Shown piece after piece: positions 46,640 through 64,000 of a stretch of 64,000 nt of DNA. The notes beneath the pieces are model-generated. The model ran no database searches, was not told the DNA's origin, and saw only the letters and a list, made by a program, of their open reading frames with translations. The stretch covers positions 1,860,001 to 1,924,000 of the forward strand of contig OZ218957.1 in assembly GCA_965112735.1 (NCBI GenBank), written 5' to 3'. The stretch's first letter is position 1; each line of letters starts with the position of its first letter. The translations under genes and the position numbers were made by a program. Source of the stretch: Phaeosaccion multiseriatum. Lineage: Eukaryota; Protista; Ochrophyta, other classes.

Positions 46640-47255
46640 CTGTGACACGCGCAAAACCCTCGGATTTGATGGGTTTGGGCGGCCGCAGAAATCCATGTGA
46701 AATTCCATGTTCCGCCATTCGTATCCCCACATTGTTTTTTTAATTCTTCTTTTTCCACTTTTTCAACATTGGGAAGGATAATCTGAGAGGGAAGGAAATC
46801 ATCGAAAGTCATATGACTAGAGGAGAGGAACGCAGGAGGATAACAGCAGCACAGCAGGAGAGAGGAGACGAAGAAAGGTGGGTGTACGATCTGACCCCCC
46901 CCCAGCCCAACCGAGGTTTAAAATTATTCATTGGCACCCCCAAACGCGCAAGATACGCGCAAATCTTCCGTGGAAAGTGGTGGCTCCTACACGTGATGTT
47001 CAGGCCATCCCAAAGGAGTGTCTTCAAGCTCTAGACGCTTGTACGGCCCACAACCCTCTGTTCCTGCCCCCGCCCCCTCGCCTCCTCATCGCTCACTCCC
47101 TTTCGATCGCTTTCCTCCAAGGAGGGAGCAGACCACAGGGAGACCACAGCGTTGCTTATCGCGGCCGGCCGGTCTCTCTCTCTCTCCATCATTACTCCCA
47201 TGCTTGCTCATTTGCCCCTGCCTCCAGCGTTGGATCTGGCCAAGAAGGAGAGAGA

Positions 47256-50200
47256 ATGCCCGGGGCCGGCAAGCAGGAGGAGCCGGTGCAGGATCAGCCT
47301 GAGCAGGGTGCAGCAACAGGTGTGGGGCAGGGACCGGCGGCGGAGACACCCGCAGCACCAGCACCAGTGCCAGGCAAAGAGGAGGAGGTTCGAAGGGCGC
47401 CTCTCTCGCCCACGCACCCAAACATGGGCAGCGGACCAACGAGAAGCGAAAAAGGCGGCCATCTTCGTGGCGACGTTGCAATTGTTGGAATGGCCTGCCG
47501 CTTCCCTGGAGGTGCCAACTCCGTTCCTGAGCTGTGGGACCTGCTCTGCAGGGAGGGCAGCGGCATCACAGACATGCCCACAGATAGGTGCGTGAGTGGG
47601 CGCTGGCTGGGTCTGGGCGACGGAACCTTGCTTGGAGAGGAGCGATGAGCGATGGGCAGCGTGCATCCATCACGGCGCTTATTAGCAATTTGCCCCCGGC
47701 TGGCGCGCTGGCTGCCGCAGCAGCAGATCTTGCTGGAGTGGTTGGGCGGGAGGGAGTTGGGATGGTAGTGGACGGGATGAGGGCTGAAGAATCACTGTAC
47801 ACACGTCGAGAGCTGATGGCTCCCACACTTTCTTTCTCTCCTTCACCCCGCCCCCTCCCTGCTTCACTGCCCTGCTTGCTGGCGCCTCCCAAAACACTCC
47901 TCCCGCGTTCGCGCACGTCTCTCTCACAGATGGGAGCCTGCGGCCTTGGACAGCGGTTACCCCACGCGGGGGGGCTTCCTCCCCGACGTAGAGCTGTTCG
48001 ATAACGCCTTCTTCAACATCTCTGACCCGGAGGCGTCCGCAATGGACCCTCAGCAGCGAGGTAAGCTCACCTGACCTCATCTCCTTGTGTTACTCGGACT
48101 TGTTTCGTCTTCAGTAGAACCAACGCTGTTCTCCTCAACACACGCAGTCATGTTGGAGGTGGCCTACGAGACCTTTCGCGACGCAGGGCTTGACAAGGAA
48201 GCTCTTCTTGAGAGCAGAACAGGTGGGTCGAGCGATGTATCACTATCAGTAGTAATGACTGAAGCAAATAGCGAGCAGGATCAGACGAAGAGGGAGCGGG
48301 ACAGAACTGCTCTGATGCTCTGATGGTCACTGACCTCACCACATACCTCACCACAAAGTCCTCTTCTCGAACGTCCAGGAGTGTTCGTCGGGTGCGGTAA
48401 CGGAGACTGGATGTCCAAAATGCAGTCCCACGCTCCTGGACCGTACGTTGCTACGGGCGCTTCAGAGGCTCTCGTGGCCAATCGGGTCTCCTTCGCCCTC
48501 GGTCTGACTGGACCTTCGCAGACCATCAACACGGCCTCTTCGTCCTCTCTCGTGGCCGTGCACCAGGCCTGCCGAGGCCTCCAAAGCCGCGACTGTGACA
48601 TGGCCCTGGCCGGAGGAGTGTCCATCATGACCAACCCCGAGCCCTTCTCCGCCATGTCATCGCTGCACTTGCTGTCAGACAAGTGCATGGTCTTTGATGC
48701 GGCTGCCAACGGCTACGTGCGGGCAGGTGAGCACGAGCGGCGCCTGCGAGACTGTAAAGAAGACTAGAAGGACGAGAATGAGATTGACATGTGGAGTAGC
48801 TTACCGCAGCCAGCGCTCTGATTCACGCCCTTTCCAGCTCCGCAAGGAGGGCGGTGAGAGGGAGAGGGAGACGGAATGAAAGAGGCGGGGAGAGGGAGAG
48901 AGGGGAAGAGGGAGCAGGCAGGAGCAGGAGAGGGAATGAGAGAGGGAATGAGAGAGGGAATGGGAGAAGCAAGGGGAGATGCATGGAGAGAAAGATCGGG
49001 AGAGCGAGAGAGGTAGCGGGAGAGAGAGAGAGAGGGCGAGACAGGGAGAGATGGAGAGGAGCAGGGGCAGAGACAAGGAGAAATGGAAAGAGAGAGGAAG
49101 GGGGGGAAATAGGGAAGGAGAGAAGTGCAGGATGAGAACGTCCTTCTTTGATGAACCTGATGAGAACGCCTCGACCACACCCTAGCTCACCCTCCAGTCA
49201 CCTCCATTTGCTGCGTGTGCCCTGCGGCTGCGAGCAGAGGGCTGCGGCGCCGTCGTGCTAAAGCGCCTCGAAGACGCCATAGAGGCCCAAGACAACATTT
49301 TGGCGGTGATTCGAGGCTCCTGCATCAATCACACGGGCCACGGCACGACCCTCACTGCCCCCAACGAAGCGGCACAGAAGGCCGTGGTCTTGGACTCCGT
49401 AGCAGAGGCGGGCATCGCTCTGTCCGACGTGAGCTTCATCGAGGCGCACGGCACGGGCACGCCCCTCGGGGACCGCACGGAGTGGGCTTCCATCGCCGGC
49501 ACCTATGGAGACCACGACCTGGCAACAGCCCGCCGTCTCGTCGTTGGAGCGATCAAGACCAACCTTGGTCACGCGGAGGCTGCGGCAGGCATTGCGGGGC
49601 TCATCAAGACGGTGCTGGTGCTCAGGCATGTCCAAGCGCCTCCCAACCTCAACCTGTCCACGCTGAACCCTGCACTGAAGACGGAGGGCAACAGCGCTCT
49701 GCTGCCCATCCCCGGACGCATGACCCCCATCTCCACCCGAATCGGAGGTGCGTTGGGGCCACTATTCAAAAACGTTTCCTGTGATCACTCACTCACTGAC
49801 CCACTCACTCAATCACTCACTCACTCACTTGTTCTCAATTTTTTTGCTAGATGATACCTACCCAGATTGGGAGGAAGAGTTATGCAAAAGCACGACTTCT
49901 AACAAGACCGGTGCTAGCAGTCGAACCCCCCCCCCCCCCGCACATGGTGACTTCTAACACACTCACTCACTCACTCACTCACTCACTCACTCACTCACTC
50001 ACTCACTCACTCACTCACTCACTCACTCACTCACTCACTCACTCACTCACTCACTCACTCACTCACTCACTCACTCACTCACTCCCGCACTCACTCCCGC
50101 ACTCACGCACTCACCCACTCACCCAATCACTCACTCACCCACTCTCACTGACTCGCTCGCTTCTTCTTGAGACAAGTTAAACTTTAGAGGGTATGAGCTA

Positions 50201-53200
50201 TCGTATGATGGTAAATGGCTGAACCCGTTCTCACCATGCCCTTCTGCTCGCTGTGGTTACTTCTGCTCCTTTTGCAGCTGTCAATTCCTTTGGGTTTGGC
50301 GGTGTCAATGCCCACGTCATTCTGGAGGGGACGGCCATCTCACACGCAGAGAAGACCAACGTCAGAGCCTCCCCGTTCACTAGCAGAAAGGCCTTCAGGC
50401 TGCTGCCCGCCCCACCGAGATCGGCGGCCGGAAAAAACTCCTTGGCAGCAGAGCTCCGCCGTGTCAGTCCAGCTGAACGCCAAGAGAGGCTTCGATCCGT
50501 CATCTCCGACATCGCCCTCTCCAGCACGGCAGGCTCTGTCGGCATCGACATGGACAAGCCTCTCATGGAGGCTGGCATGGATTCGTTGGCGCTCATGGAG
50601 CTGAGGCAGCGTCTGCACCTGCTCACGGACATTCCCGTTAGCAGTGCCGCCCTCTTCGCCCACCCCACCGTGGCGGCCTTGGCGGAGTGGTTGGGCTCAG
50701 CGCTCATGGAGGGAAGTGCGAGCAGCCTGCGCCTGTCCAGGAGGCTGCCATCGCCTCAGGGGGGGGGCGACCCCTCTGCCCCGCTTGCACTGGTGGGTAT
50801 GGCGTGCCGCTTCCCCGGAGGCGCAGACAGCCCTGAAGCTTTCTGGTCCATGCTACTGGAGGGGAGAGACTGCATCAGCGCCATGCCCCCGGGAAGATTC
50901 GCGGGTGCGGCAAAGGAGTGGCACGGAGGCTTCATCGACGGAGTGGAGATGTTCGACAACGCCGTGTTTCGCATCTCCGCGGCCGAGGCGGAGGCCATGG
51001 ACCCCACTCAGCGCATCATGCTCGAGGTCGGCTACGAGGCGCTGCACGCGGCAGGCTTCTCTGTGGACACGCTGCGCAACAGCAGCACCGGAGTATTCGT
51101 GGGCGCCATGCAGCACGGCGACTGGGCCGCGCTCAACAAAGACGGGGCCGCCAAGACCCACTCTATGATGGGCCAGTCAGCGAGCTGCCCTGCAAACCGC
51201 CTGTCCTACGCGCTGGGCTTGAGCGGTCCGAGTATGTCCGTTGATACGCTCTGCTCTTCGTCACTCGTTGCCCTGGACGCGGCGTGTCGTTATCTTCGCC
51301 TCGGCACGTGCGAAGCTGCGGTGGTGGGAGGTGTGAACTTGCTGCTCGGCGCCCGGTCCTTCGAGCTGCTCGACAACGGAGGTTTCCTGTCCAAGGACTG
51401 GTACGTAATAATTGACTCAGGGGCTTATTATTACGAGTAGAGTCGTGGTGTTTGGTTGACAGGTACTTCGACTACAAACATGTTATTAATCTCTCTCATG
51501 GCCTTGTCGTCCTCCGCTCCCGTCTGCCTCTTGCATGCCCTCCTCAGGCGCTGCAAGACGTTCGACACCTCGGCCAACGGCTATGTCCGAGGAGAGGGTT
51601 GCGGTGCCGTAGTGCTGAAACGGCTTGATGACGCGGAGCGCAACGGAGACAACATCCTGGCTGTCGTGCGGGGAAGCGGCGTGAACCACAACGGGCGCTC
51701 TATGCGACTCACGGCACCGAGTCCCGACGCGCAGCAGACTCTGATTGAGGCAGCCTTGGAGGAGGCCGGTGTAGAGGGCTCCGAGGTTCACTTCGTGGAG
51801 GCGCACGGCACCGGCACGGCCCTTGGCGACCCCATCGAGATGAGCGCCCTCAAAGCCGCCTATGGAGAAGGGCGGGAGAGCTCTTTCCCACTCATGGTCG
51901 GAGCTGTCAAGACCAACATTGGTCACTTGGAGGGCGCCGCAGGCATCGCGGGACTCATCAAGACCATCCTCGCCCTTCAGCACCGAGCTGCTCCACGCAA
52001 TCTGCACCTCGGCAAGCTCAATCCTGAGATTGATGTTGATGGATTCGCGGTGGCATTCCCTTCGTCAAGACTATCTCCATTGGGTAGCGAGGAGGGACAC
52101 CTCCATGACCGCGAGGAGGTGCTGTACGCAGGAGTAAGCTCGTTCGGAGCAGGAGGCACCAACGCGCATGTGGTGCTGAGCAGCGCTGCGCGGAGCGTGG
52201 AGGGACGGGTCTCGAAAGCGCCGAAGAGGAGTGAGGATACGGAGGTCGCCTCACCTGCGCACGTCTTTCTCTTCACGGGGCAAGGCTCGCAGTACCCCGG
52301 AATGGGCAAGGAGCTCTACGACGAGGTTAGTTGATTCGTTGCGCGCACCATCTCCGTCTAGCTCTCTTGTCATAGCCCCTGTTGTGCTCCATCACCTCGG
52401 CCTACCTGCCCTCGTTCTCATATTCGTCTCTCTCTCTTATTCCCTCCGCTCTCTGTGCCTCTCTTTTGGTGCCTCAATAGCGTGTGGTCTTTCGCGAGTG
52501 CGTGCAGCGGTGCAGCGGACTGCTCATGGAGCGGGACTGGCTAGACAAGTCCGTGGTAGAGCTCATGTACCCTGCCACGGCGGGGAAAGAGGAGGAGGAG
52601 GAGGAGGAGCGTGCACAAGCCCTGCTGAAGGAGACACGCTACTGCCAGCCATGCCTGTTCGTGCTGGAGTACGCCCTGTGTGAGCTGTGGAAGTCGGAGG
52701 GCGTGGAGCCTTTCATGGTGATGGGCCACAGCCTGGGCGAGGTAGCGGCGGCGTGCGTGGCCGGCGTCATGTCGCTGGAGGACGGGCTGATGTTGTCCGC
52801 CAAGAGAGGAGCCGCCATGCAGGCCTGCCCCAAGGGGGATGGAGTGATGATCGCAGTGAGGGCAGGCAGGCAAGCAACAATGGCTAGCATCGACGCTGCG
52901 GGAGTGGCAGGCGAGGTGGTGCTGGCGTCCTCCAACGGCCCTCAGGCCTGCGTGATCTCTGGCGCTCGCACCGCTGTGGACAAGGTGGTGGAGAAGCTCA
53001 CGGCAGATGGGGTGGGCTGCAAGGCCCTGGAAGTGTCGCATGCCTTCCACTCGCCCCTGATGCAGCCCGCTGTGCGTTCTCTGGAGGAGGCTCTAAGTGA
53101 GGTGTCACTCAACGCCCCACGCATTCCCCTGGTGTCCAACGTGACAGGCGAGGTGGTGAAGGCTGAGGAGGTGACGCAGGTAGCGTACTGGGTGCAGCAC

Positions 53201-56200
53201 ATGCTATCGCCGGTGCTGTTCGCGGAGAGCATCACCACGCTGCTCCGGGAGAGGCCTGAAGGTGTACGAGTGGTAGAGATTGGGCCCAGCTCTGTGCTGA
53301 TCAACATGGCGCGGCAATGCGAGGGAGAGAGGTCGGACGTGATGTGGCAGCCGTCCATGCGGCGGGAGGGGAGCGACACCACCTCGTTCGACAGAGCAGT
53401 GGCGGCAGTGCTGGGCAGGCCCACACCTCTGTTCCCCACCCGTCGTGCGCTCCCTTGGTTCGAGCAGCAGGCGCATGCGATGATTCCAAGCGGCGGCGTC
53501 GTCGAGAAGAAGGGAGGAACACTCCTCTCATGCCGCTTCACCCCTCAGCTCAAGGGCTTGCTGCAAGATCACGCGGTGGGAGGAGTGGTGCTCATGCCGG
53601 GCATGGGGTACATCGAGATTGGCCTTGCCGCCTTGCTGAAGGGCAAGCCTTTCCCTGGCGAGAGGCAAGTGGTCCTGAAGGGCCTGGTCTTCATGTCTCC
53701 ACTGGAAATTGCAGGCGCTCGTGCCCCCGATGTGGACCGTACGGTGGAGGGCTCCACCACTGTGGTCGCTTCTGAAGTCAGTGCCTTCATCACTGCCCGC
53801 GGCAGCGTGCAGTTTATCGAAGGTCCCCACGACAAGGCTGGGGAGACGGTGGCGAAGGCAACTTCCCTTCAATTGCGCGCAAGGACGGAGGCAGAGGCAT
53901 TGGACGTGGCGCGGGTGAGAGCCGCGGTGGGAGACGAGGACATCGCCGAGGGGCTCTACCTCAAGCTTGCCAGTGCTGGTTATGACTACGGTGCCAGCTT
54001 TGTCCGAACGCAGCACCTGTTCGCCGCCAGTGGACAGGCCTTGTCCGTTGCGGCGGCAATGGATGGCAGCCTATCGGCGGAGTGGGAGATCAACGGCTTC
54101 TACCTCCACCCTGCAGTCCTGGATAATGCCGCGCACACCATGCTGGCGCTCTTGCCTGAGGAGCTGACGAGCAAGGCCTTTGCCGCCGTCTTCTTGCCCA
54201 CCGGCTGCGAAGAGGTGCTTGTGCGAGGGGCCATCACGGGCGAGAAGGTGTGGGTGCATGCGGTGGCGAACGAGGTGGACTCTCAAGCTCTTGCGATCGA
54301 GTGCGACGTCGTGATAGCACACTTCGAGACGAAGCAAGTGCTCGTGCAGCTCAACCACTTCCGGATGCAGCTGGCCCGAGGCTTCTCCCGCACCAACCCC
54401 GTCAACCGAGCGCTGTATTCTCTACAGTGGCTGCCCAACGATTCCATCTCCCGCAGCAGAGGTGACGTGGAAGAGCGAGAGGAAGCTTGGCTGCTCCTCA
54501 CCAGCGGCGCTCGTGGCAGCTTGGACAAGGCAGCGAAAGAGAGCTTGCCCATCTCTGTGACACTGACGGAGAGGGAGATCAGGAGCATCGACGACTCCAC
54601 CCTCGCTTCAGAAGCGCCAGCAGGATGGGGCCGTGTGGTGTGCACCTTGTTCGGCGGCAAGCAGCAGAGCCCTAGCCAAGAGGCACAGACACTCCTCTTG
54701 TTGCTACAGCAGCTTTTACGAAGGCCAGCTCCTTTGATGGTGCTGGTGCAGGACACGCTGAGCGGCGGCGAGGGGTGGAGGCATCACTGGGTGTACGGCA
54801 TGATTCGAACCGCTCGTGCCGAGCACCCTTCGCTGGCCATCACGGTGGTGGACGTGGGCAGCGTGGACCTTCCCAAGTGCTGGGCCATCGCGTCACTGGG
54901 GCAGGACGTGTGGGTGCGAGACGGACGATATCTCACGCCTCACCTGACGCCCTCAACAGACACGCACCTCCCATTCTCCTTTGATCTCATGGTGAGGGGA
55001 AGCATCGAAGGCGGCTTGAAGCGCAGAGACGTACTCCCTTCCGAGAGAGACGCTGCCTTGCAGGACGGGGAGATTGAAATTTGTGTCAAGGCGGTGGGGC
55101 TCAACTTCAGAGACGTGCTGAATGTGCTGGACCTGTACCCTGGCGACCCTGGACAGCCTGGCATCGAGCTATCGGGGGTGGTCACTCGAGCATCGCGAAA
55201 CTCGCGCTTTCAAGTGGGAGACAAGGTCTACGGGTTTCCGGACAAGGGCTGCTTCTGCTCCCACGTAACGACAAGTGACGTGTGTCTGGCCAACATGCCT
55301 TCCAACAGGACGTTCGATGACATGGCAGCGCTGCCCATCGCGTGGCTCACAGTGGTGCACGCCTTTGAGCAACTCGCTGGCTTGAAGCGTGGTGAGAAGG
55401 TGCTCATCCATGCCGCGTCAGGTGGAGTGGGTCTCGTGGCCGTGCAGATTGCTCAGCGCATCGGAGCGGAGATCTACGCCACTGCTGGATCCGGGGAGAA
55501 GCACGCCTACTTGCGAGGCATGGGCGTGAAGAACATTGCGTCGTCGCGAGATGCGGAGGCCTTCAAGGCTTCCATGGGAGCTGCAAAGGTGGATGTGGTG
55601 CTTAATTGCCTGTCCGACAACTTCATCTCTTACTCTCTGGAGCTGCTGACGAAGAACGGGCGCTTCATGGAGATCGGCAAGCGAGGCGTGTGGACCAGGG
55701 AGGCGATGAAGGCTGCCAGGCCCGACGTGCTATACGAGCTGATTGCACTGGACTCCATGATAGCAGACGACTTCAAGGCCGAGAAGCAGGGCTGGGCGTT
55801 CGCTGGGCTGGAGCAGCTGACAGCGGACAGCGAGGCGGGCAGGGTCGAGGCGCTACCAGTGAAGACATTCGACTTGAGGGATGAGCTTGCGGAGGCAATG
55901 AACTTCCTCAGAACTGCGAAGCACATTGGGAAGGTTGTGCTCAGTAGCCCTGAGTGTGGTATTCCCGTCGTGCGAGACGGGACTTACGTCATCAGCGGTG
56001 GGCTGGGGGCGCTGGGGCTGGCGACTGCGAAGCATTTGGCTGATAAAGGAGCTCGTCATCTTGTACTGCTCTCGCGAGGGGGAAAGGTCAAGGCGGACTC
56101 CCAGTCGCTGTGGGAGGAGCTTCTCACCGTGGCTGGCGGGGTGAGCACCAAGGCTGTATCGTGCAACGTGTCTAGCGCGCAGTCGCTTGAGAAGGCTCTA

Positions 56201-59200
56201 GGCACGGCGCTCAGTAGCATGCCGCCCGTACGAGGTGTCATCCACGCTGCTGGTGTGCTCGACGATCGCTTGCTGGTGGACCAGACGCCCGAGAGTATCG
56301 AAGAGGTCTTCAAGCCGAAGGTGGAGGGCGCTTGGAATCTGCACGAGCTGTCGCTGCAGATGGCCTGGCCCTTGGACTTCTTTGTGTCCTACACATCCAT
56401 GGCAGGTGTGTTAGGCAATGCAGGCCAGGCCAACTATGCTGCAGCCAACGCTGCTGTGGACGGGCTGATGCAGCATCGTCGGCGTCTCGGTCACTCCAGC
56501 TCTGTGGCCCTCCAGTGGGGGCCGTGGGGCGAAGCTGGCATGGCCGCTCGGTCCGAAGTTGCCATGGCCAGTCTGGAGATGGCCGGCGTTGGGCTCATCA
56601 GTAAGGCATTGGGTATGGCGGCGCTTGATGCCGGCGTGTCAGCTCCATCTGCGGCATCGCGCGAGCTCTTGGTTCTGCCTGGCATGGACTGGCCCGCCTT
56701 CTCTGAGGCTGCTGGCAACCCCGGGATGCTCGATGCTCTCGTTAGAGAGGCTTCGATGATGGGACCGCAGAACAAGGCTAGCAACAGCGTGACTACCGAG
56801 GTTAAGCGCGACCTACTCGAGCTTTCGGAGGGAGAGCGAAAGCCCATGCTGCAGGCTTTAATCATGGAGATGGCAAAAGCATGCATTGGGGAAGCAGGCA
56901 TCGAGCTCGACGCTTTGAGGCCTTTGATGGAGGCTGGGCTGGACTCCATGTCTACGGTGGAGCTTCGGAGTCGACTCCAAGCTCGCTTCGGCGTGCCGGT
57001 CCCCAACGATGTGCTCTTCAGTCACCCCTCAGTGGCAGCGCTGACTGAGTGGCTCGAGGGCTTGGTGATGGGAGCTGAGGAGGGTGAAGAAGAGAGGAAT
57101 GCTGAACCGGCTGGAGGTAGCATGACTGCCCCCCTGGCTGTTGTGGGCATGGCGTGCCGCTTTCCGGGGGGCTCGAACAGTCCAGAGGCCTTCTGGTCAA
57201 TGCTGCGCGCAGGTACTGACTGCATTCAGACTGCCCCTCTGAGCCGGTGGGCGGGAAAAGAGGGGAGCGAAGATTGGCAAGGCAGCTTCATTGCTGACGT
57301 GGAAATGTTTGACCCTGCCGTATTCGGCATCTCGTTTGCCGAAGCGGCTGCGATGGATCCGCACCAGCGAGTGATGCTGGAGGTTGGATACGAGGCATTG
57401 GTCAACGCGGGGTGCGACAAAGCAAGCTTGGCGGGCAGTCGGGCAGGCGTCTTCATCGGCATGATGAGCCTCGGCGACTGGGGCTACCAGGGCAAGGATG
57501 TAGGGGCTGGAGTATACCGCACTATGGGTCGCATCCAATGTGGCGTTGCCAATCGGCTCTCGTACGTGCTGGGGCTGCAGGGCCCGTCCATGACCACTGA
57601 CACGGCGTGCTCGTCATCGCTGGTGGCCTTGGAAAACGCTTGCAGCAGCTTACGCATGGGCAAGTGCGATTCCGCTGTCGTCGGGGGCGTCAATTGCTTG
57701 CTCGGGCCAGTAGCCTTTGAGGACATTCAGGGCAGCGGCTTCCTGTCGCCGGACTGGTAAGTGCTTCCATTTTGTACCTCCTCCTCCGTCTCGTCCGACG
57801 TTACTTGCGCCGCCGACTAAAACTCCCCTCACGCTTCCCATGCCCTTCTCAGGCGCTGCAAGACGTTCGACGCGTCGGCAAACGGATACGTGCGTGGTGA
57901 AGGATGCGGTGCCGTTGTGCTGAAACTTTTGGATGACGCCCTCGCTGCCGGAGACACGGTCCTCGCTGTGATTGAGGGCTGTGCCGTGAACCACAACGGA
58001 ACCAGTGCCCGCCTCACGGCCCCCAGCCCCGCCGCCCAGCAGAGACTCATCGAGGCGACGCTGCGTGAGGCCGGTCGAGAGGGCTCCGAGGTACGCATCG
58101 TGGAGGCACACGGCACGGGCACATCTCTCGGCGACCCAATCGAGATGAGTGCTCTCAGGGCCACGTACGGAAAGAACCGTGACGAGTCTTTCCCGCTGGT
58201 AGTGGGTGCGGTCAAGACCAACATTGGCCATCTGGAGGGTGCGGCGGGCATTGCCGGGCTCATCAAGGCCGTCTTGATGCTGCAGCACCGCGCCGTGCCC
58301 GCCAACCTTCACCTCGAGAGCGTCAACCCGGAGCTGGACATGGACGGCTTCCCCGTGCAGCTCCCGTCGGTGATGGTGCAGCTGGAGGACGAGGGAGATA
58401 TGTTGGTGGGGGTGAGCTCATTCGGGGCGGGAGGAACGAATGCACACGTGCTGCTGAGGAGCCATGGGGAGAAGAGTGACTCCGTACTGACGGCTGGTAT
58501 GAAAAGCGATGGGGGGCCCGTCGTCAAGGAGGAGGCGCTCTTCCCGAATCGTGTGGCCTTCCCGTGGTACAAGAGCGATTATCACGCTTTATTTCCGAGT
58601 GGAGGGGTGCGAGATGAGAAGGGCGGGGTGCTGCTGTCCTGCCCATTCTCTCCAAGGCTCAAGGGCCTGCTGCAGGAGCACGCAGTGGGGGGGGTGGTGC
58701 TCATGCCCGGCATGGGCTACATTGAGCTGGCCCTGGCCACGCTGCTGAGGGGCGAGGCCTTCCCCGCAGATGGCCAGGTGCGCATGAAGGGCCTCGTCTT
58801 CACGGCCCCGCTAGAGGTGGCAGGCGTCTGTGTACCTGGCGTGGAGCGGATGGTGGATGGGTCCACGACGGTGGCATGCTCGGAGGTGAACGTGTTCCTC
58901 TCTGCCCACGGTAAGACGCGGATCACGGGCGGCTCCCGCGGCAAGGCAGGTGAGGCTGTGGCCAGGGCGGCGTCAGTGGTGCTGGAGGCAAGAGAGGCTA
59001 CTGCAATGATGGACGTGAGGAGCATCCAGGAGGCAGTGGGGCAGCGAGACGTGTCGGGTGAGCTGTACGCCACGTTCGCCAAGGCCGGCTTCAACTACGG
59101 CCCCCGCTTCAGGCGGACAGAGCGCTTGTACGCTGCCGAGGGACAGGCTCTGTCCGTATCGACAGCGCAGGACCCCAGCCTGTGCTCTGAGTGGGAGGTG

Positions 59201-62200
59201 CGTGGATTCTACCTCCACCCCGCCGTCCTGGACAGTGCCGCACACACCATGCTTGCGCTTCTACCTTCTGATCTAACCAAGGGTGGTACGTTCTTGCCAG
59301 CTGGATGCAATGACGTGGTTGCGAAGGGCGCCATCAGAGGAGACAAGGTGTGGGTGCATACCGTGCTCACCGAGATCAGCGACAAGCGCGACAGCGTCAA
59401 CTTTGACATTGTCATTGCCGACTTTGACAGCCAGTACGTGCTCGTGACCATGAAGGGCGTCAAGCTGCAGAGGGCCAAGGGCTTTACGCTCCTGAACCCT
59501 CTTCGTCGAGCCTTATACTATCTGGAGTGGCAGCCAGACAAGGCTCTGGCTCTGGCAACCACCACGGGGAAGGATGGTGTGGAGAAGGAGACGTGGCTGG
59601 CTTTGGTAGATAGAGTAAGTGCAGCTACAGCGTTGGTGAAGCGTATTGAGCAATCAGTGCCCGAGCACGTTACGCTGCGTGTGCAGGAGCGTGCCTATGA
59701 CCAAGATGTGGTGAGGGCCTTGGAGAGGGGCGAGTGGTCGCGAGTGCTGTACGTGATCGGCGGTGGGAGAGAGGAGGGACAGACGGCAAGGTCATCAGCC
59801 AGCGCCGCTCAGCAGGAAGCACAGAAGCTGCTGGCGGTAACGCAGCAGCTGGCCAAGAGACTAATCCCCTTGATGGTGCTACTACACGACACGCTGAGCG
59901 GGGGGGGCGAGGGATGGGCACACATGCTGGTCTTTGGCATGATTCGCTCCGTTCGTATCGAGCGGCCAGAGATGCAGATCATGGTCGTGGAAGCGGATGT
60001 GGAGGACATGAGCTTGGTGTTGTGTCTTCCCCTCCAGAGTCAGGACGTGCGTGTGCAAGGAGGAGAGTGCGAGACGCCTCAGCTGACTCGCTCCTCGGTA
60101 GTCAGCCTTCCCTTCTCCTTCGATCTCATGGCGAGGGGAAGCATCGAAGGAGGCTTGAAGCGCAGAGACGTACTCCCTTCCGAGAGAGACACTGCCTTGC
60201 AGGACGGGGAGATTGAAATTTGTGTCAAGGCGGTGGGGCTCAACTTCAGAGACGTGCTGAACGTGCTCGACCTGTACCCTGGCGACCCTGGACAGCCTGG
60301 CATCGAGCTATCGGGGGTGGTCACTCGAGCATCGCGAAACTCGCGCTTTCAAGTGGGAGACAAGGTCTACGGGTTTCCGGACAAGGGCTGCTTCTGCTCC
60401 CACGTAACGACAAGTGACGTGTGTCTGGCCAACATGCCTTCCAACAGGACGTTCGATGACATGGCAGCGCTGCCCATCGCGTGGCTCACAGTGGTGCACG
60501 CCTTTGAGCAACTCGCTGGCTTGAAGCGTGGTGAGAAGGTGCTCATCCATGCCGCGTCAGGTGGAGTGGGTCTGGTGGCCGTGCAGATTGCTCAGCGCAT
60601 CGGAGCGGAGATCTACGCCACTGCTGGATCCGAGGAGAAGCACGCCTACTTGCGAGGCCTGGGCGTGAAGAACATTGCGTCGTCGCGAGATGCGGAGGCC
60701 TTCAAGGCTTCCATGGGAGCTGCAAAGGTGGATGTGGTGCTCAATTGCCTGTCCGACAACTTCATCCCTTACTCTCTGGAGCTGCTGACGAAGAACGGGC
60801 GCTTCATGGAGATCGGCAAGCGAGGCGTGTGGACCAGGGAGGCGATGAAGGCTGCCAGGCCCGACGTGCTGTACGAGCTGATTGCGCTGGACTCCATGAT
60901 AGCAGACGACTTCAAGGCCGAGAAGCAGGGCTGGGCGTTCGCTGGGCTGGAGCAGCTGACAGCGGACAGTGAGGCGGGCAGGGCTGAGGCGCTACCAGTG
61001 AAGGCGTTCGACTTGAGGGATGAGCTTGCGGAGGCAATGAACTTCCTCAGAACTGCGAAGCATATAGGGAAGGTTGTGCTCAGTAGCCCTGAGTGTGGCA
61101 TTCCCGTCGTGCGAGATGGGACTTACGTTATCAGCGGTGGGCTGGGGGCACTGGGGCTGGCGACTGCGAAGCATTTGGCTGATAAAGGAGCTCGTCATCT
61201 TGTACTGCTCTCGCGAGGGGGAAGGGTCAAGGCGGACTCCCAGGCGCTGTGGGAGGAGCTTCTCACCGTGCCCGGCGGGGTGAGCACCAGGGCTGTATCG
61301 TGCGACGTGTCTAGCGCGCAGTCGCTTGAGAAGGCCCTAGGCACGGCGCTCAGCAGCATGCCGCCCGTGCGAGGTGTCATCCATGCTGCTGGCGTGCTCG
61401 ACGATCGCTTGCTGGTGGACCAGACGCCCGAGAGTATCGACGAGGTCTTCAAGCCGAAGGTGGAGGGCGCTTGGAATCTGCACGAGCTGTCGCTGCAGAT
61501 GGCCTGGCCCTTGGACTTCTTTGTGTCCTACACATCCATGGCAGGTGTGTTAGGCAATGCAGGCCAGGCCAACTATGCTGCAGCCAACGCTGCTGTGGAC
61601 GGGCTGATGCAGCATCGTCGGCGTCTCGGTCACTCCAGCTCTGTGGCCCTGCAGTGGGGGCCGTGGGGCGAAGCTGGCATGGCCGCTCGGTCCGAAGTTG
61701 CCATGGCCAGTCTGGAGATGGCCGGCGTTGGGCTCATCAGTAAGGCATTGGGTATGGCGGCGCTTGATGCTGGCGTGTCAGCCCCATCTGCGGTATCGCG
61801 CGAGCTCTTGGTCCTGCCTGGCATGGACTGGCCCGCCTTTTCTCAGGCTGCTGGCAACCCGGGGATGCTTGATGCTCCTGTTAGAGAAGCTTCAATGGTT
61901 GGATCGCAGAACAAGGCTAGCAACAGTGTGACTACCGAGGTTAAGCGCGACCTACTGGAGCTTTCGGAGGAAGAGCGAAAGCCCATGCTGCAGGCTTTAA
62001 TCATGGAGATGGCAAAAGCATGCATTGGGGAAGCAGGCATCGAGCTCGACGCTTTGAGGCCTTTGATGGAGGCTGGGCTGGACTCCATGTCTACGGTGGA
62101 GCTTCGGAGTCGACTCCAAGCTCGCTTCGGCGTGTCCGTCCCCAACGACGTGCTTTTCAGTCACCCCTCAATCGTAGCACTGTCTACCTGGCTGGAAGCC

Positions 62201-64000
62201 TTGGTGATGGGATCTGAGGAGGATGATGAGGGTGAGAGTGAGTCGATTGGATACCAGAGGGGCGACATGAAGGCATCGTTAGCGGTGGTGGGCATGGCCT
62301 GCCGCTTGCCAGGTGGTTCGAACAGCCCAGAGGAGTTTTGGGCCATGCTTAGCAATGGCAAGGACTGTGTCCAGCCTGCTCCGCTCGACCGCTGGGCGAG
62401 CAAGGAGGAGGATGAGCAGCAGTGGCAAGGAAGCTTCATCGACGGCGTGGAAATGTTCGATCCATCTGTGTTCGGCATATCCAGCCCTGAGGCTTCTGCC
62501 ATGGACCCACACCAGCGGGTGATGCTGGAGGTGGGACTGGAGGCGCTTGTGACTGCGGGCTATACCAAGCAAAGCCTGAGTGGCAGTCAGACCGGAGTGT
62601 TCGTGGGCATGAGCGGCAGTGACTGGGGATCCCTCGGGGAAGGCTCATCCTCGACAGGCGCGTATAGCACCATGGGCGCAGCCGGGGCAAGCGTGTCCAA
62701 TCGTCTGTCGTACACGCTCGGACTGCAGGGCCCGTCCATGACCACTGACACGGCGTGCTCGTCCTCTCTGGTGGCCCTGGACAGCGCTTGCAGCAGCTTA
62801 CGCATGGGCAAGTGCGACGCAGCCGTGGTGGGCGGAGTGAATCTGTTGCTGGGCACGCAGAGCTTCGAAAGGCTGAAGGGAAGTGGTTTCTTATCGCCCG
62901 ACGGGTACGTGCGCTTATGTGTGGAGTGCTTTCATTCCTGTTTGTGTTCACCCCTCTTCTCCCTTTGGCCATCGCCTCTCTGGCAAATCGCACAGTGAGA
63001 ACGACTTGAGTGCCTTACCAAGTCAACTTATCTCACCCCATCCCACAATTCCCATGCCCTTCTCAGGCGCTGCAAGACGTTCGACGCGTCGGCAAACGGA
63101 TACGTGCGTGGTGAAGGATGCGGTGCCGTTGTGCTGAAACTTTTGGATGACGCCCTCGCTGCCGGAGACACGGTCCTCGCTGTGATTGAGGGCTGTGCCG
63201 TGAACCACAACGGAACCAGTGCCCGCCTCACGGCCCCCAGCCCCGCCGCCCAGCAGAGACTCATCGAGGCGACGCTGCGTGAGGCCGGTCGAGAGGGCTC
63301 CGAGGTACGCATCGTGGAGGCACACGGCACGGGCACATCTCTCGGCGACCCAATCGAGATGAGTGCTCTCAGGGCCACGTACGGAAAGAACCGTGACGAG
63401 TCTTTCCCGCTGGTAGTGGGTGCGGTCAAGACCAACATTGGCCATCTGGAGGGTGCGGCGGGCATTGCCGGGCTCATCAAGGCCGTCTTGATGCTGCAGC
63501 ACCGCGCCGTGCCCGCCAACCTTCACCTCGAGAGCGTCAACCCGGAGCTGGACATGGACGGCTTCCCCGTGCAGCTCCCGTCGGTGATGGTGCAGCTGGA
63601 GGACGAGGGAGATATGTTGGTGGGGGTGAGCTCATTCGGGGCGGGAGGAACGAATGCACACGTGCTGCTGAGGAGCCATGGGGAGAAGAGTGAGGGTGCG
63701 CCAGGCCCTAATCCGGTGCAAGCAGAGACTCCAGTGGCGTTCTTGTTCACTGGGCAGGGTTCGCAGTACGTGGGCATGGGCAGGGAGCTGTACGAGAAGG
63801 AGGGCGTGTTCCGCGAGTGCATACAGCGGTGCAGCGGACTTCTCATGGAGCGGGCCTGGCTGGACAAGTCTGTGGTGGAGCTCATGTACCCTACCGCCGC
63901 TCAGGACGGGAAGGAGGAGCAGGAGAAGACTGCACAAGCGCTGCTGAAGGAGACACGCTACTGCCAGCCGTGCCTGTTTGTGCTGGAGTATGCCCTGTGT
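47256..64000 (+). CDS. Multimodular type I polyketide/fatty acid synthase, continuing past the window end: KS*-ACP | KS-AT-DH-ER-KR-ACP | KS-DH-ER-KR-ACP | KS-AT...
   Basis: Introns at about 47588-47929, 48061-48147, 48223-48378, 48728-49237, 49748-50277, 51401-51547, 52327-52480, 57757-57852 and 62905-63066 join one reading frame. Motifs GMACRFPG, DTACSSS, EAHGTGT, KTNIGHLE, GQGSQ, GHSLG, HAFHS, HxxxGxxxxP, GLNFRD, HAASGGVG, GGLGALG, HAAGVLDD, NYAAAN and G(L/M)DS. Start codon uncertain. Confidence 0.95.
47472..50700 (+). other. PKS module 1 (putative loading unit): KS with active-site Cys->Ser, then ACP, no AT
   Basis: INTASSSSL (TCT at 48537-48539); HGTGT and NLGHAE retained; ACP motif GMDSL at 50574-50588. 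Confidence 0.85.
50780..57060 (+). other. PKS module 2: KS-AT(malonyl-type)-DH-ER-KR(B-type)-ACP
   Basis: DTLCSSS; GHSLG at 52724-52738; HAFH at 53039-53050; DHAVGGVVLMP; LDD; NYAAAN; GLDS. Confidence 0.9.
54970..62169 (+). repeat. Near-identical ~2.06-kb direct repeat (ER-KR-ACP): 54970-57030 and 60109-62169
   Basis: Constant offset of 5139; about 20 amino-acid differences in ~690 residues by eye. Confidence 0.92.
57130..62200 (+). other. PKS module 3: KS-DH-ER-KR-ACP, no AT
   Basis: KS ends at NAHVLLRS (~58463) and is followed within ~35 aa by LFPNRVAFPW and the DH. There is no GQG, GHSxG or HAFH motif and no intron in between. Confidence 0.9.
57835..63693 (+). repeat. Apparently identical 645-bp direct repeat (intron 3' end plus KS C-terminal half): 57835-58479 and 63049-63693
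   Basis: Constant offset of 5214; no differences seen by eye, and the antisense ORF translations also match. Confidence 0.92.
62275..64000 (+). other. PKS module 4 (partial): KS-AT...
   Basis: DTACSSS, HGTGT, GHLE, then VAFLFTGQGSQYVGMGRELY...ETRYCQPCLFVLEY. Confidence 0.9.

Follow-up and report, generated by a model that had tools for sequence, protein, structure and literature searches.

The giant polyketide synthase (PKS) gene described here occupies positions 47256–64000 of a 64,000-nucleotide stretch of DNA (the window, hereafter) from the ochrophyte alga Phaeosaccion multiseriatum (assembly GCA_965112735.1, contig OZ218957.1, positions 1,860,001 to 1,924,000 of the forward strand). Judged from its sequence, the region is the front end of a single intron-containing gene for an assembly-line PKS from a eukaryotic alga; modules with and without an acyltransferase (AT) domain alternate in it. 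The ketosynthases (KS) of modules 2–4 and the AT of module 2 are assigned a cis-AT type of ancestry, and we lean towards the view that the embedded ATs supply the AT-less modules overall. A mixed layout of this sort is already known (PMC10394414, PMC4661987 and the protein P0003 of Chrysoparadoxa australica), and the gene represents neither a new class nor a new kind of enzyme.

The gene model consists of ten exons (47256–47587, 47930–48060, 48148–48222, 48379–48726, 49238–49747, 50278–51400, 51548–52325, 52481–57756, 57853–62904 and 63067 to beyond 64000), with a putative start ATG at 47256 and a reading frame that is still open at the end of the window. All nine introns are bounded by GT and AG at homology-guided junctions, and the frame is kept across each of them. 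Searches, alignments and trees were made on single exons, and the KS trees were calculated separately for the two exon-wise halves of the domain. Along the plus strand the Pfam matches follow in the order KS, ACP, KS, AT, DH, ER, KR, ACP, KS, DH, ER, KR, ACP, KS, AT (ACP, acyl carrier protein; DH, dehydratase; ER, enoylreductase; KR, ketoreductase), corresponding to the layout KS-ACP / KS-AT-DH-ER-KR-ACP / KS-DH-ER-KR-ACP / KS-AT. Four KSs and three ACPs are thereby found in one frame-consistent chain of exons, as in modular type I PKSs; KS2–4 carry the Cys-His-His set and the ACPs carry DSL or DSM. A preliminary description of this DNA, made from the letters and open reading frames (ORFs), had reported ATs in modules 2 and 4 and none in modules 1 and 3. 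Pfam scans of the exon ORFs gave the same distribution, and the GHSLG and HAFH motifs noted for module 2 were recovered as well (Table 1). The same description had placed all modules in one continuous reading frame, which agrees with the finding that the boundaries ACP1/KS2, ACP2/KS3 and ACP3/KS4 each lie inside an exon. Since the ORFs are continuous at the module boundaries and introns occur only inside KS and AT domains, the product is predicted to be a single polypeptide. Upstream of KS1, no FAAL/AMP-binding exon was found within the window. The frame of exon 1 is open for a further 145 codons upstream of the ATG (46821–47255), without a Pfam match; a different start codon or a further 5' exon may exist.

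The lack of an AT can be followed to the residue in module 3, which lies in an uninterrupted ORF of 1,725 codons (57821–62995). Its KS core ends with GTNAHV (58433–58450) and is soon followed by LFPNRVAFPW, the counterpart of the LFPTRRALPW motif that comes after AT2. Because the gap between the two motifs is only 23 residues, there is no room in it for an AT or for a KS-AT linker domain. The match to PF16197 in module 3 stops at profile position 50, and a remnant of the KS-AT linker domain, by which bacterial trans-AT modules are recognised, was not found there. The direct joining of KS3 to the post-AT linker, as given in the preliminary description, therefore stands, with these 23 residues in between. 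What did not hold is that the missing docking remnant would be special to AT-less modules, as the AT-bearing modules also have no linker domain. From the end of the KS to the start of the AT there are 32 residues in module 2 (52173–52265), 26 in module 4 (63665–63739) and 21 in C. australica P0003 (residues ∼2310–2330), compared to 94–206 residues (median 112) in 56 bacterial KS-AT pairs taken from the search hit lists. The canonical cis-AT arrangement, with KS, linker domain and AT in every extension module, is not seen either: module 3 has no AT and modules 2 and 4 have no linker domain. For the KS-AT of C. australica, AlphaFold gave a model (mean pLDDT 91.5, pTM 0.69) with confident KS and AT folds and a low-confidence join of 7 residues. 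In Foldseek searches this model matched solved KS-AT didomains over both domains, at a TM of only ∼0.5 and a root-mean-square deviation of 15–18 Å. Because of these values the model does not appear to reproduce the canonical geometry of KS, linker domain and AT, the pose of the two predicted domains relative to each other being itself uncertain. It looks as if the AT were a compact cassette of ∼330 residues set between two short linkers, the AT-less module having the same architecture minus the cassette. Searches of the 64 kb by tblastn with AT2 retrieved AT2 and AT4 only and no AT in the 47 kb upstream of the gene; over 195 bp, AT4 and AT2 are 86% identical at the DNA level.

Table 1. Features of the PKS gene, with positions numbered from the first nucleotide of the window.
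Feature	Position	Strand	Details
Megasynthase gene, front end	47256–64000	+	Exon ORFs and Pfam, homology-guided GT-AG junctions; ∼4,853 codons in the window
KS1	47475–50318	+	Split by five introns; NTASSSS active site 48528–48548, EAHGTGT 49441–49461, KTNLGH 49555–49572
Module 1 connector and ACP1	50319–50693	+	FTSRKAFRL 50376–50402; ACP1 50544–50693, GMDSLA 50574–50591; no AT
KS2	50784–52172	+	DTLCSSS 51243–51263; phase-2 intron 51401–51547 between ...DW and RCK...
AT2, malonyl-type (predicted)	52266–53458	+	GHSLG 52724–52741, HAFH 53039–53050; intron 52326–52480; LFPTRRALPW 53429–53458
Module 2 reductive loop and carrier	53507–57055	+	DH2 53507–54370 (HAVGGVVLMP), ER2 55064–55942 (HAASGGVG), KR2 55979–56530 (LDD, YAAAN), ACP2 56867–57055
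ER-KR-ACP tract, ∼2.07 kb	54975–57040 and 60114–62179	+	96.7% DNA identity; flanks 55–70%
KS3	57134–58450	+	DTACSSS 57599–57619, both His motifs kept; intron 57757–57852
Identical tract, 645 bp	57835–58479 and 63049–63693	+	100% identity; last 18 bp of intron and KS second half
Module 3 AT-less junction	58451–58567	+	23 residues after KS core, then LFPNRVAFPW 58538–58567
Module 3 reductive loop and carrier	58616–62194	+	DH3 58616–59476, ER3 60203–61081, KR3 61118–61669, ACP3 62006–62194
KS4	62279–63664	+	DTACSSS 62747–62767; intron 62905–63066
AT4, start	63740–64000	+	FLFTGQGSQ 63740–63766; first ∼87 residues only, ends at the window edge

Module 1 is of a different kind. KS1 has NTASSSS where DTACSSS would be expected, with Ser at the position of the catalytic Cys, and keeps both His motifs; the domain is probably non-condensing, to judge from this substitution. 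The KS core ends in GVNAHV, which is followed by FTSRKAFRL, resembling the post-AT linker, and then by ACP1. The stretch from KS1 to ACP1 contains no AT, and with lengths of 87–530 bp the introns of module 1 leave no room for an AT exon. In view of the Cys-to-Ser replacement, the two retained His motifs, the predicted N-terminal position and the missing upstream FAAL exon, we interpret module 1 as a KS(Ser)-ACP loading didomain and not as the extension module for which it had been taken initially. Decarboxylating KS(Q)/KS(S) loading modules of bacterial cis-AT PKSs share with it the N-terminal KS in which the Cys is replaced and both His are kept, the ACP that comes next and the expected decarboxylation to acetyl, but they possess an AT of their own, which the algal module lacks. 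A Ser variant of the loading KS reportedly occurs in the loading module of NysA, from nystatin biosynthesis; no statement on Ser-type loading KSs was found in the open-access papers that were consulted. KSQ domains decarboxylate malonyl-ACP (PMC7327777). In the KS trees the exon carrying the first half of KS1 (48381–48725, 115 residues) clustered with bacterial trans-AT KSs (98*), on a long branch and with 46% of the columns filled, unlike the second half (49238–49747), which clustered with the algal clade. The conflicting placement of the two halves may reflect either a mosaic KS or long-branch attraction.

When the gene was compared with itself, KS3 and KS4 matched without a difference over 645 bp that contain their second halves (Table 1), and this identity ends exactly where module 4 enters the AT and module 3 enters the linker. 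A second tract, which spans ER, KR and ACP of modules 2 and 3, contains 36 synonymous versus 25 non-synonymous codon differences. It includes the two ACPs, in which 73 of 80 residues are identical, a similarity that the preliminary description had taken as fitting the sharing of one AT by the two modules. That argument does not survive the comparison: the near-identity of ACP2 and ACP3 is part of the ∼2.07-kb tract, and as it extends over ER and KR and over synonymous sites, it was rejected as a sign of AT sharing. The tract is best read as a product of gene conversion or recent duplication and not of selection for a shared AT partner. More generally, the modules are evidently undergoing homogenisation by one of these two processes. 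An origin of the alternation by duplication of a bimodule (modules 1 and 2 giving rise to modules 3 and 4) was considered and rejected, because KS1 has diverged strongly and module 3, apart from its missing AT, is similar to module 2 rather than to module 1.

KS2, KS3 and KS4 have in common a phase-2 intron at the same site, between ...SPD(G/W) and RCK..., which is absent from KS1 and from the KSs of C. australica; its last 18 bp do not differ between KS3 and KS4. Either this intron predates the duplication of the modules or it was spread by gene conversion. Among the introns of module 1, intron 5 contains a (CACT)n microsatellite of ∼46 copies (49960–50144) and 11 more copies of TCAC at 49785–49829, and intron 4 contains GA-rich imperfect repeats (48890–49097).

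A word-based protein search retrieved no protein of this genome, the best identity being 37–39%. The best full-length matches to the segment of module 3 that runs from the second half of the KS through the linker to the DH were P0001, P0003 and P0029. Of these, P0001, from a Logan contig, has three KSs and no AT, and P0029, from JGI, likewise has no AT, the sequences of these two extending to up to 2,826 residues. P0003 of C. australica, a partial protein annotated at NCBI as an unnamed protein product, has the domain order FAAL-ACP-KS(no AT)-DH-KR-ACP-KS-AT-DH, and is truncated by the end of its contig, which continues for only ∼600 bp beyond the partial gene. When maximum-likelihood trees were made of the second and first KS halves, KS2–4 together with P0003, P0001 and P0029 formed a starred clade (97*, 98*), nested among AT-bearing, mostly cyanobacterial KSs of the cis-AT type and apart from a clade of 23 bacterial AT-less sequences of the PksL type. 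Both halves of KS2–4 fall outside the bacterial trans-AT KS clade. AT-less and AT-bearing KSs are intermixed within the algal clade, as illustrated by the k1/k2 pair of P0003 (99*) and by the identical second halves of KS3 and KS4. The best relative of AT2 with a solved structure is the KS-AT didomain of CurL (E 2e-66), and its nearest proteins are cyanobacterial cis-AT PKSs, of Moorena and Okeania (40–45% identity); FabD and DisD are much more distant (E ∼1e-25). The KS and AT sequences are both of the cis-AT type, which is the evidence for the ancestry proposed above.

A scheme can be drawn from these domains. KS1 would decarboxylate malonyl-ACP1 to yield an acetyl starter, modules 2 and 3 would each add one saturated C2 unit (the LDD motif of the KRs and the motifs of DH and ER being intact), and a chain at the hexanoyl level would be handed to KS4. 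Full reduction by modules 2 and 3, with DH, ER and KR, had been noted before and was confirmed; the 'saturated long-chain lipid' proposed as the product goes beyond the data, as the window has two saturating extensions only. Malonate for ACP1 and ACP3 would most likely come from embedded ATs within the same dimeric polypeptide. Of two routes, the more economical would employ the AT of the next module, since ACP(n) would dock on KS(n+1)-AT(n+1) anyway for chain handover; an ACP-to-ACP relay, as proposed for the fungal LasC/LasD, would be the other. A further step, which we consider doubtful, would be to regard the AT as a mobile cassette without a linker domain, held ∼25 flexible residues away from its KS and routinely loading two carriers, the ACP of its own module and that of the AT-less module before it, the latter while docked for handover. 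On this view a ratio of one AT to two modules would be by design, maintained by gene conversion that stops at the cassette boundary, and would not mark a half-finished transition to trans-AT.

Several observations weigh against supply by the embedded ATs, or against the gene model on which it is built. Splicing and the single polypeptide are deductions from ORFs and homology, and of seven public sequencing runs, none of them on record as RNA, five contain the stretch; the contigs of the four that were compared look like DNA, as they read through an intron and contain no splice joints. With just 41% identity between ACP1 and ACP2, nothing points to a recognition surface shared by the two. The observed alternation extends over no more than four modules, and the gene continues past the window. 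As gene conversion homogenises the KSs within the gene, the trees are silent on the number and direction of AT losses or gains. To our knowledge, every alga also has FabD-type malonyl transferases, which would be able to serve the AT-less modules. Finally, free-standing ATs are generally assumed for algal multimodular PKSs (PMC4661987).

The last two points lead to a different source of malonate. The AT-less modules might be served by a discrete AT whose gene lies in another part of the genome (a dedicated trans-AT, or a malonyl-CoA:ACP transacylase of the FabD type), with each embedded AT loading its own ACP only, which would make the enzyme a true cis/trans hybrid. We regard this as possible but rather unlikely. 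Algal multimodular PKSs are mostly AT-less and have been read as trans-AT (PMC4661987), including the giant PKSs of pelagophytes and haptophytes (PMC10366177; PKZILLA preprint), and P0001 and P0029, which belong to the same KS clade as KS2–4, would have to obtain malonate from outside the AT-less stretches known of them. On the other side, the 47 kb upstream contain no AT gene, KS2–4 lie outside the bacterial trans-AT clade, module 3 retains no linker-domain remnant, and LasC/LasD is functional without a trans-AT (PMC13749307); moreover, no algal trans-AT was found named in the papers on algal PKSs that were consulted. It is also conceivable that module 3 does not extend the chain, being a recent AT-deleted duplicate that is skipped, that acts as an extra reductive or pass-through unit, or that is decaying. 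Module 3 has indeed the look of a young mosaic, with the second half of its KS a 100% copy of that of KS4 and its ER-KR-ACP part a 97% copy of module 2, and non-elongating modules are common in PKZILLAs (PKZILLA preprint). However, KS3 keeps the Cys and both His, all motifs of DH, ER, KR and ACP are preserved, and the reading frame runs for 5 kb without interruption. Divergence from the paralogues amounts to 60–72% in DH3 and in the first half of KS3, so that the module as a whole is not new, and the tract shared with module 2 has more synonymous than non-synonymous differences. A non-extending module 3 is therefore quite improbable.

The exact repeat of 645 bp raised the additional concern that the AT-less junction might be an artefact of assembly, as the identity of KS3 and KS4 stops precisely at the junction, where a mis-join would sit. 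Public contigs were compared over 54100–60050; runs X1–X3 may share the source sample of the window, which makes their support less than fully independent. The junction is crossed by an X3 contig (58390–58535), with 90 bp in the repeat and 56 bp in the unique linker of module 3, and the flanks of module 4 appear separately, as loose ends that lie precisely at 57835 and 58479 and carry the letters of module 4. The bridging contig and the separate loose ends indicate that the junction is not an assembly error and that both copies are real. In addition, the read depth is ∼2x over the repeat, the downstream DH3 is unique sequence, and the same join of KS to linker to DH is present in C. australica; run X5, which comes from another study, covers the linker and DH3 of module 3 (58506–59626). 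An artefact is thus extremely improbable. All four runs showed consistent single-base alternatives within 54100–60050 (for example at 57243, 57271, 57298 and 57316), which suggests a second allele or a strain that is ∼1% different. Some of the alternatives in 55300–55850 may be letters of the module 3 copy placed on module 2.

As the source of extender units for AT-less modules of eukaryotic PKSs, the sole functional study (on LasC/LasD, 2026) points to embedded ATs. The algal gene represents a compact natural test case, as it combines an AT-less loading didomain, an AT-less fully reducing module and AT cassettes that lack the usual rigid linker domain, with the second half of the AT-less KS3 being identical to that of its AT-bearing neighbour KS4. 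Two details are of particular value, namely the KS-AT cores without a linker domain and the putative gene-conversion tract that stops at the AT boundary. They suggest a picture in which layouts evolve by loss or gain of an AT cassette together with gene conversion inside one gene. This would fit the published model for algal multimodular PKSs, which invokes module duplication and 'AT displacement' in a group where noniterative cis-AT examples have also been mentioned (PMC4661987).

With bacterial trans-AT PKSs of the bacillaene/PksL type the algal gene shares AT-less modules in which the KS is followed by a short linker of the ...R(Y/F)W type. It differs from them in that KS2–4 lie outside the trans-AT KS clade and lack a KS-flanking linker-domain remnant, and in that every second module has an embedded AT and the 64-kb window contains no discrete one. 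Mixed assembly lines, which account for ∼5% of catalogued PKSs, likewise combine AT-less and AT-bearing modules in bacteria, but usually with a discrete AT gene in the cluster and with canonical KS-linker domain-AT cores, whereas the algal case is predicted to be one spliced eukaryotic polypeptide. In the fungal LasC/LasD, which makes strasseriolide C in Lasiodiplodia theobromae, ATs are present in modules 2, 4 and 7 only and the loading module is AT-less; the product is formed in Aspergillus oryzae without a trans-AT, and in vitro the loading ACP receives malonyl groups from the module 2 ACPs; the authors propose that the other AT-less modules are served likewise (PMC13749307). The two systems are alike in being eukaryotic assembly lines with ATs embedded in some modules only and with an AT-less loading module. 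LasC/LasD differs in being fungal and in having MT domains, four tandem ACPs and other loading-module and domain sets, and the route demonstrated there is ACP-to-ACP transfer, not direct AT action. P0003 of C. australica is only 34–39% identical to the Phaeosaccion gene, starts with FAAL-ACP instead of KS(Ser)-ACP and has intronless KSs. Nevertheless, it belongs to the same KS clade (97*/98*), shows the same mixture of a KS(no AT)-DH-KR-ACP module followed by KS-AT-DH, runs from its AT-less KS straight into the post-AT-linker motif LFSSRQRFPW and, like modules 2 and 4, places its AT a short distance behind the KS.

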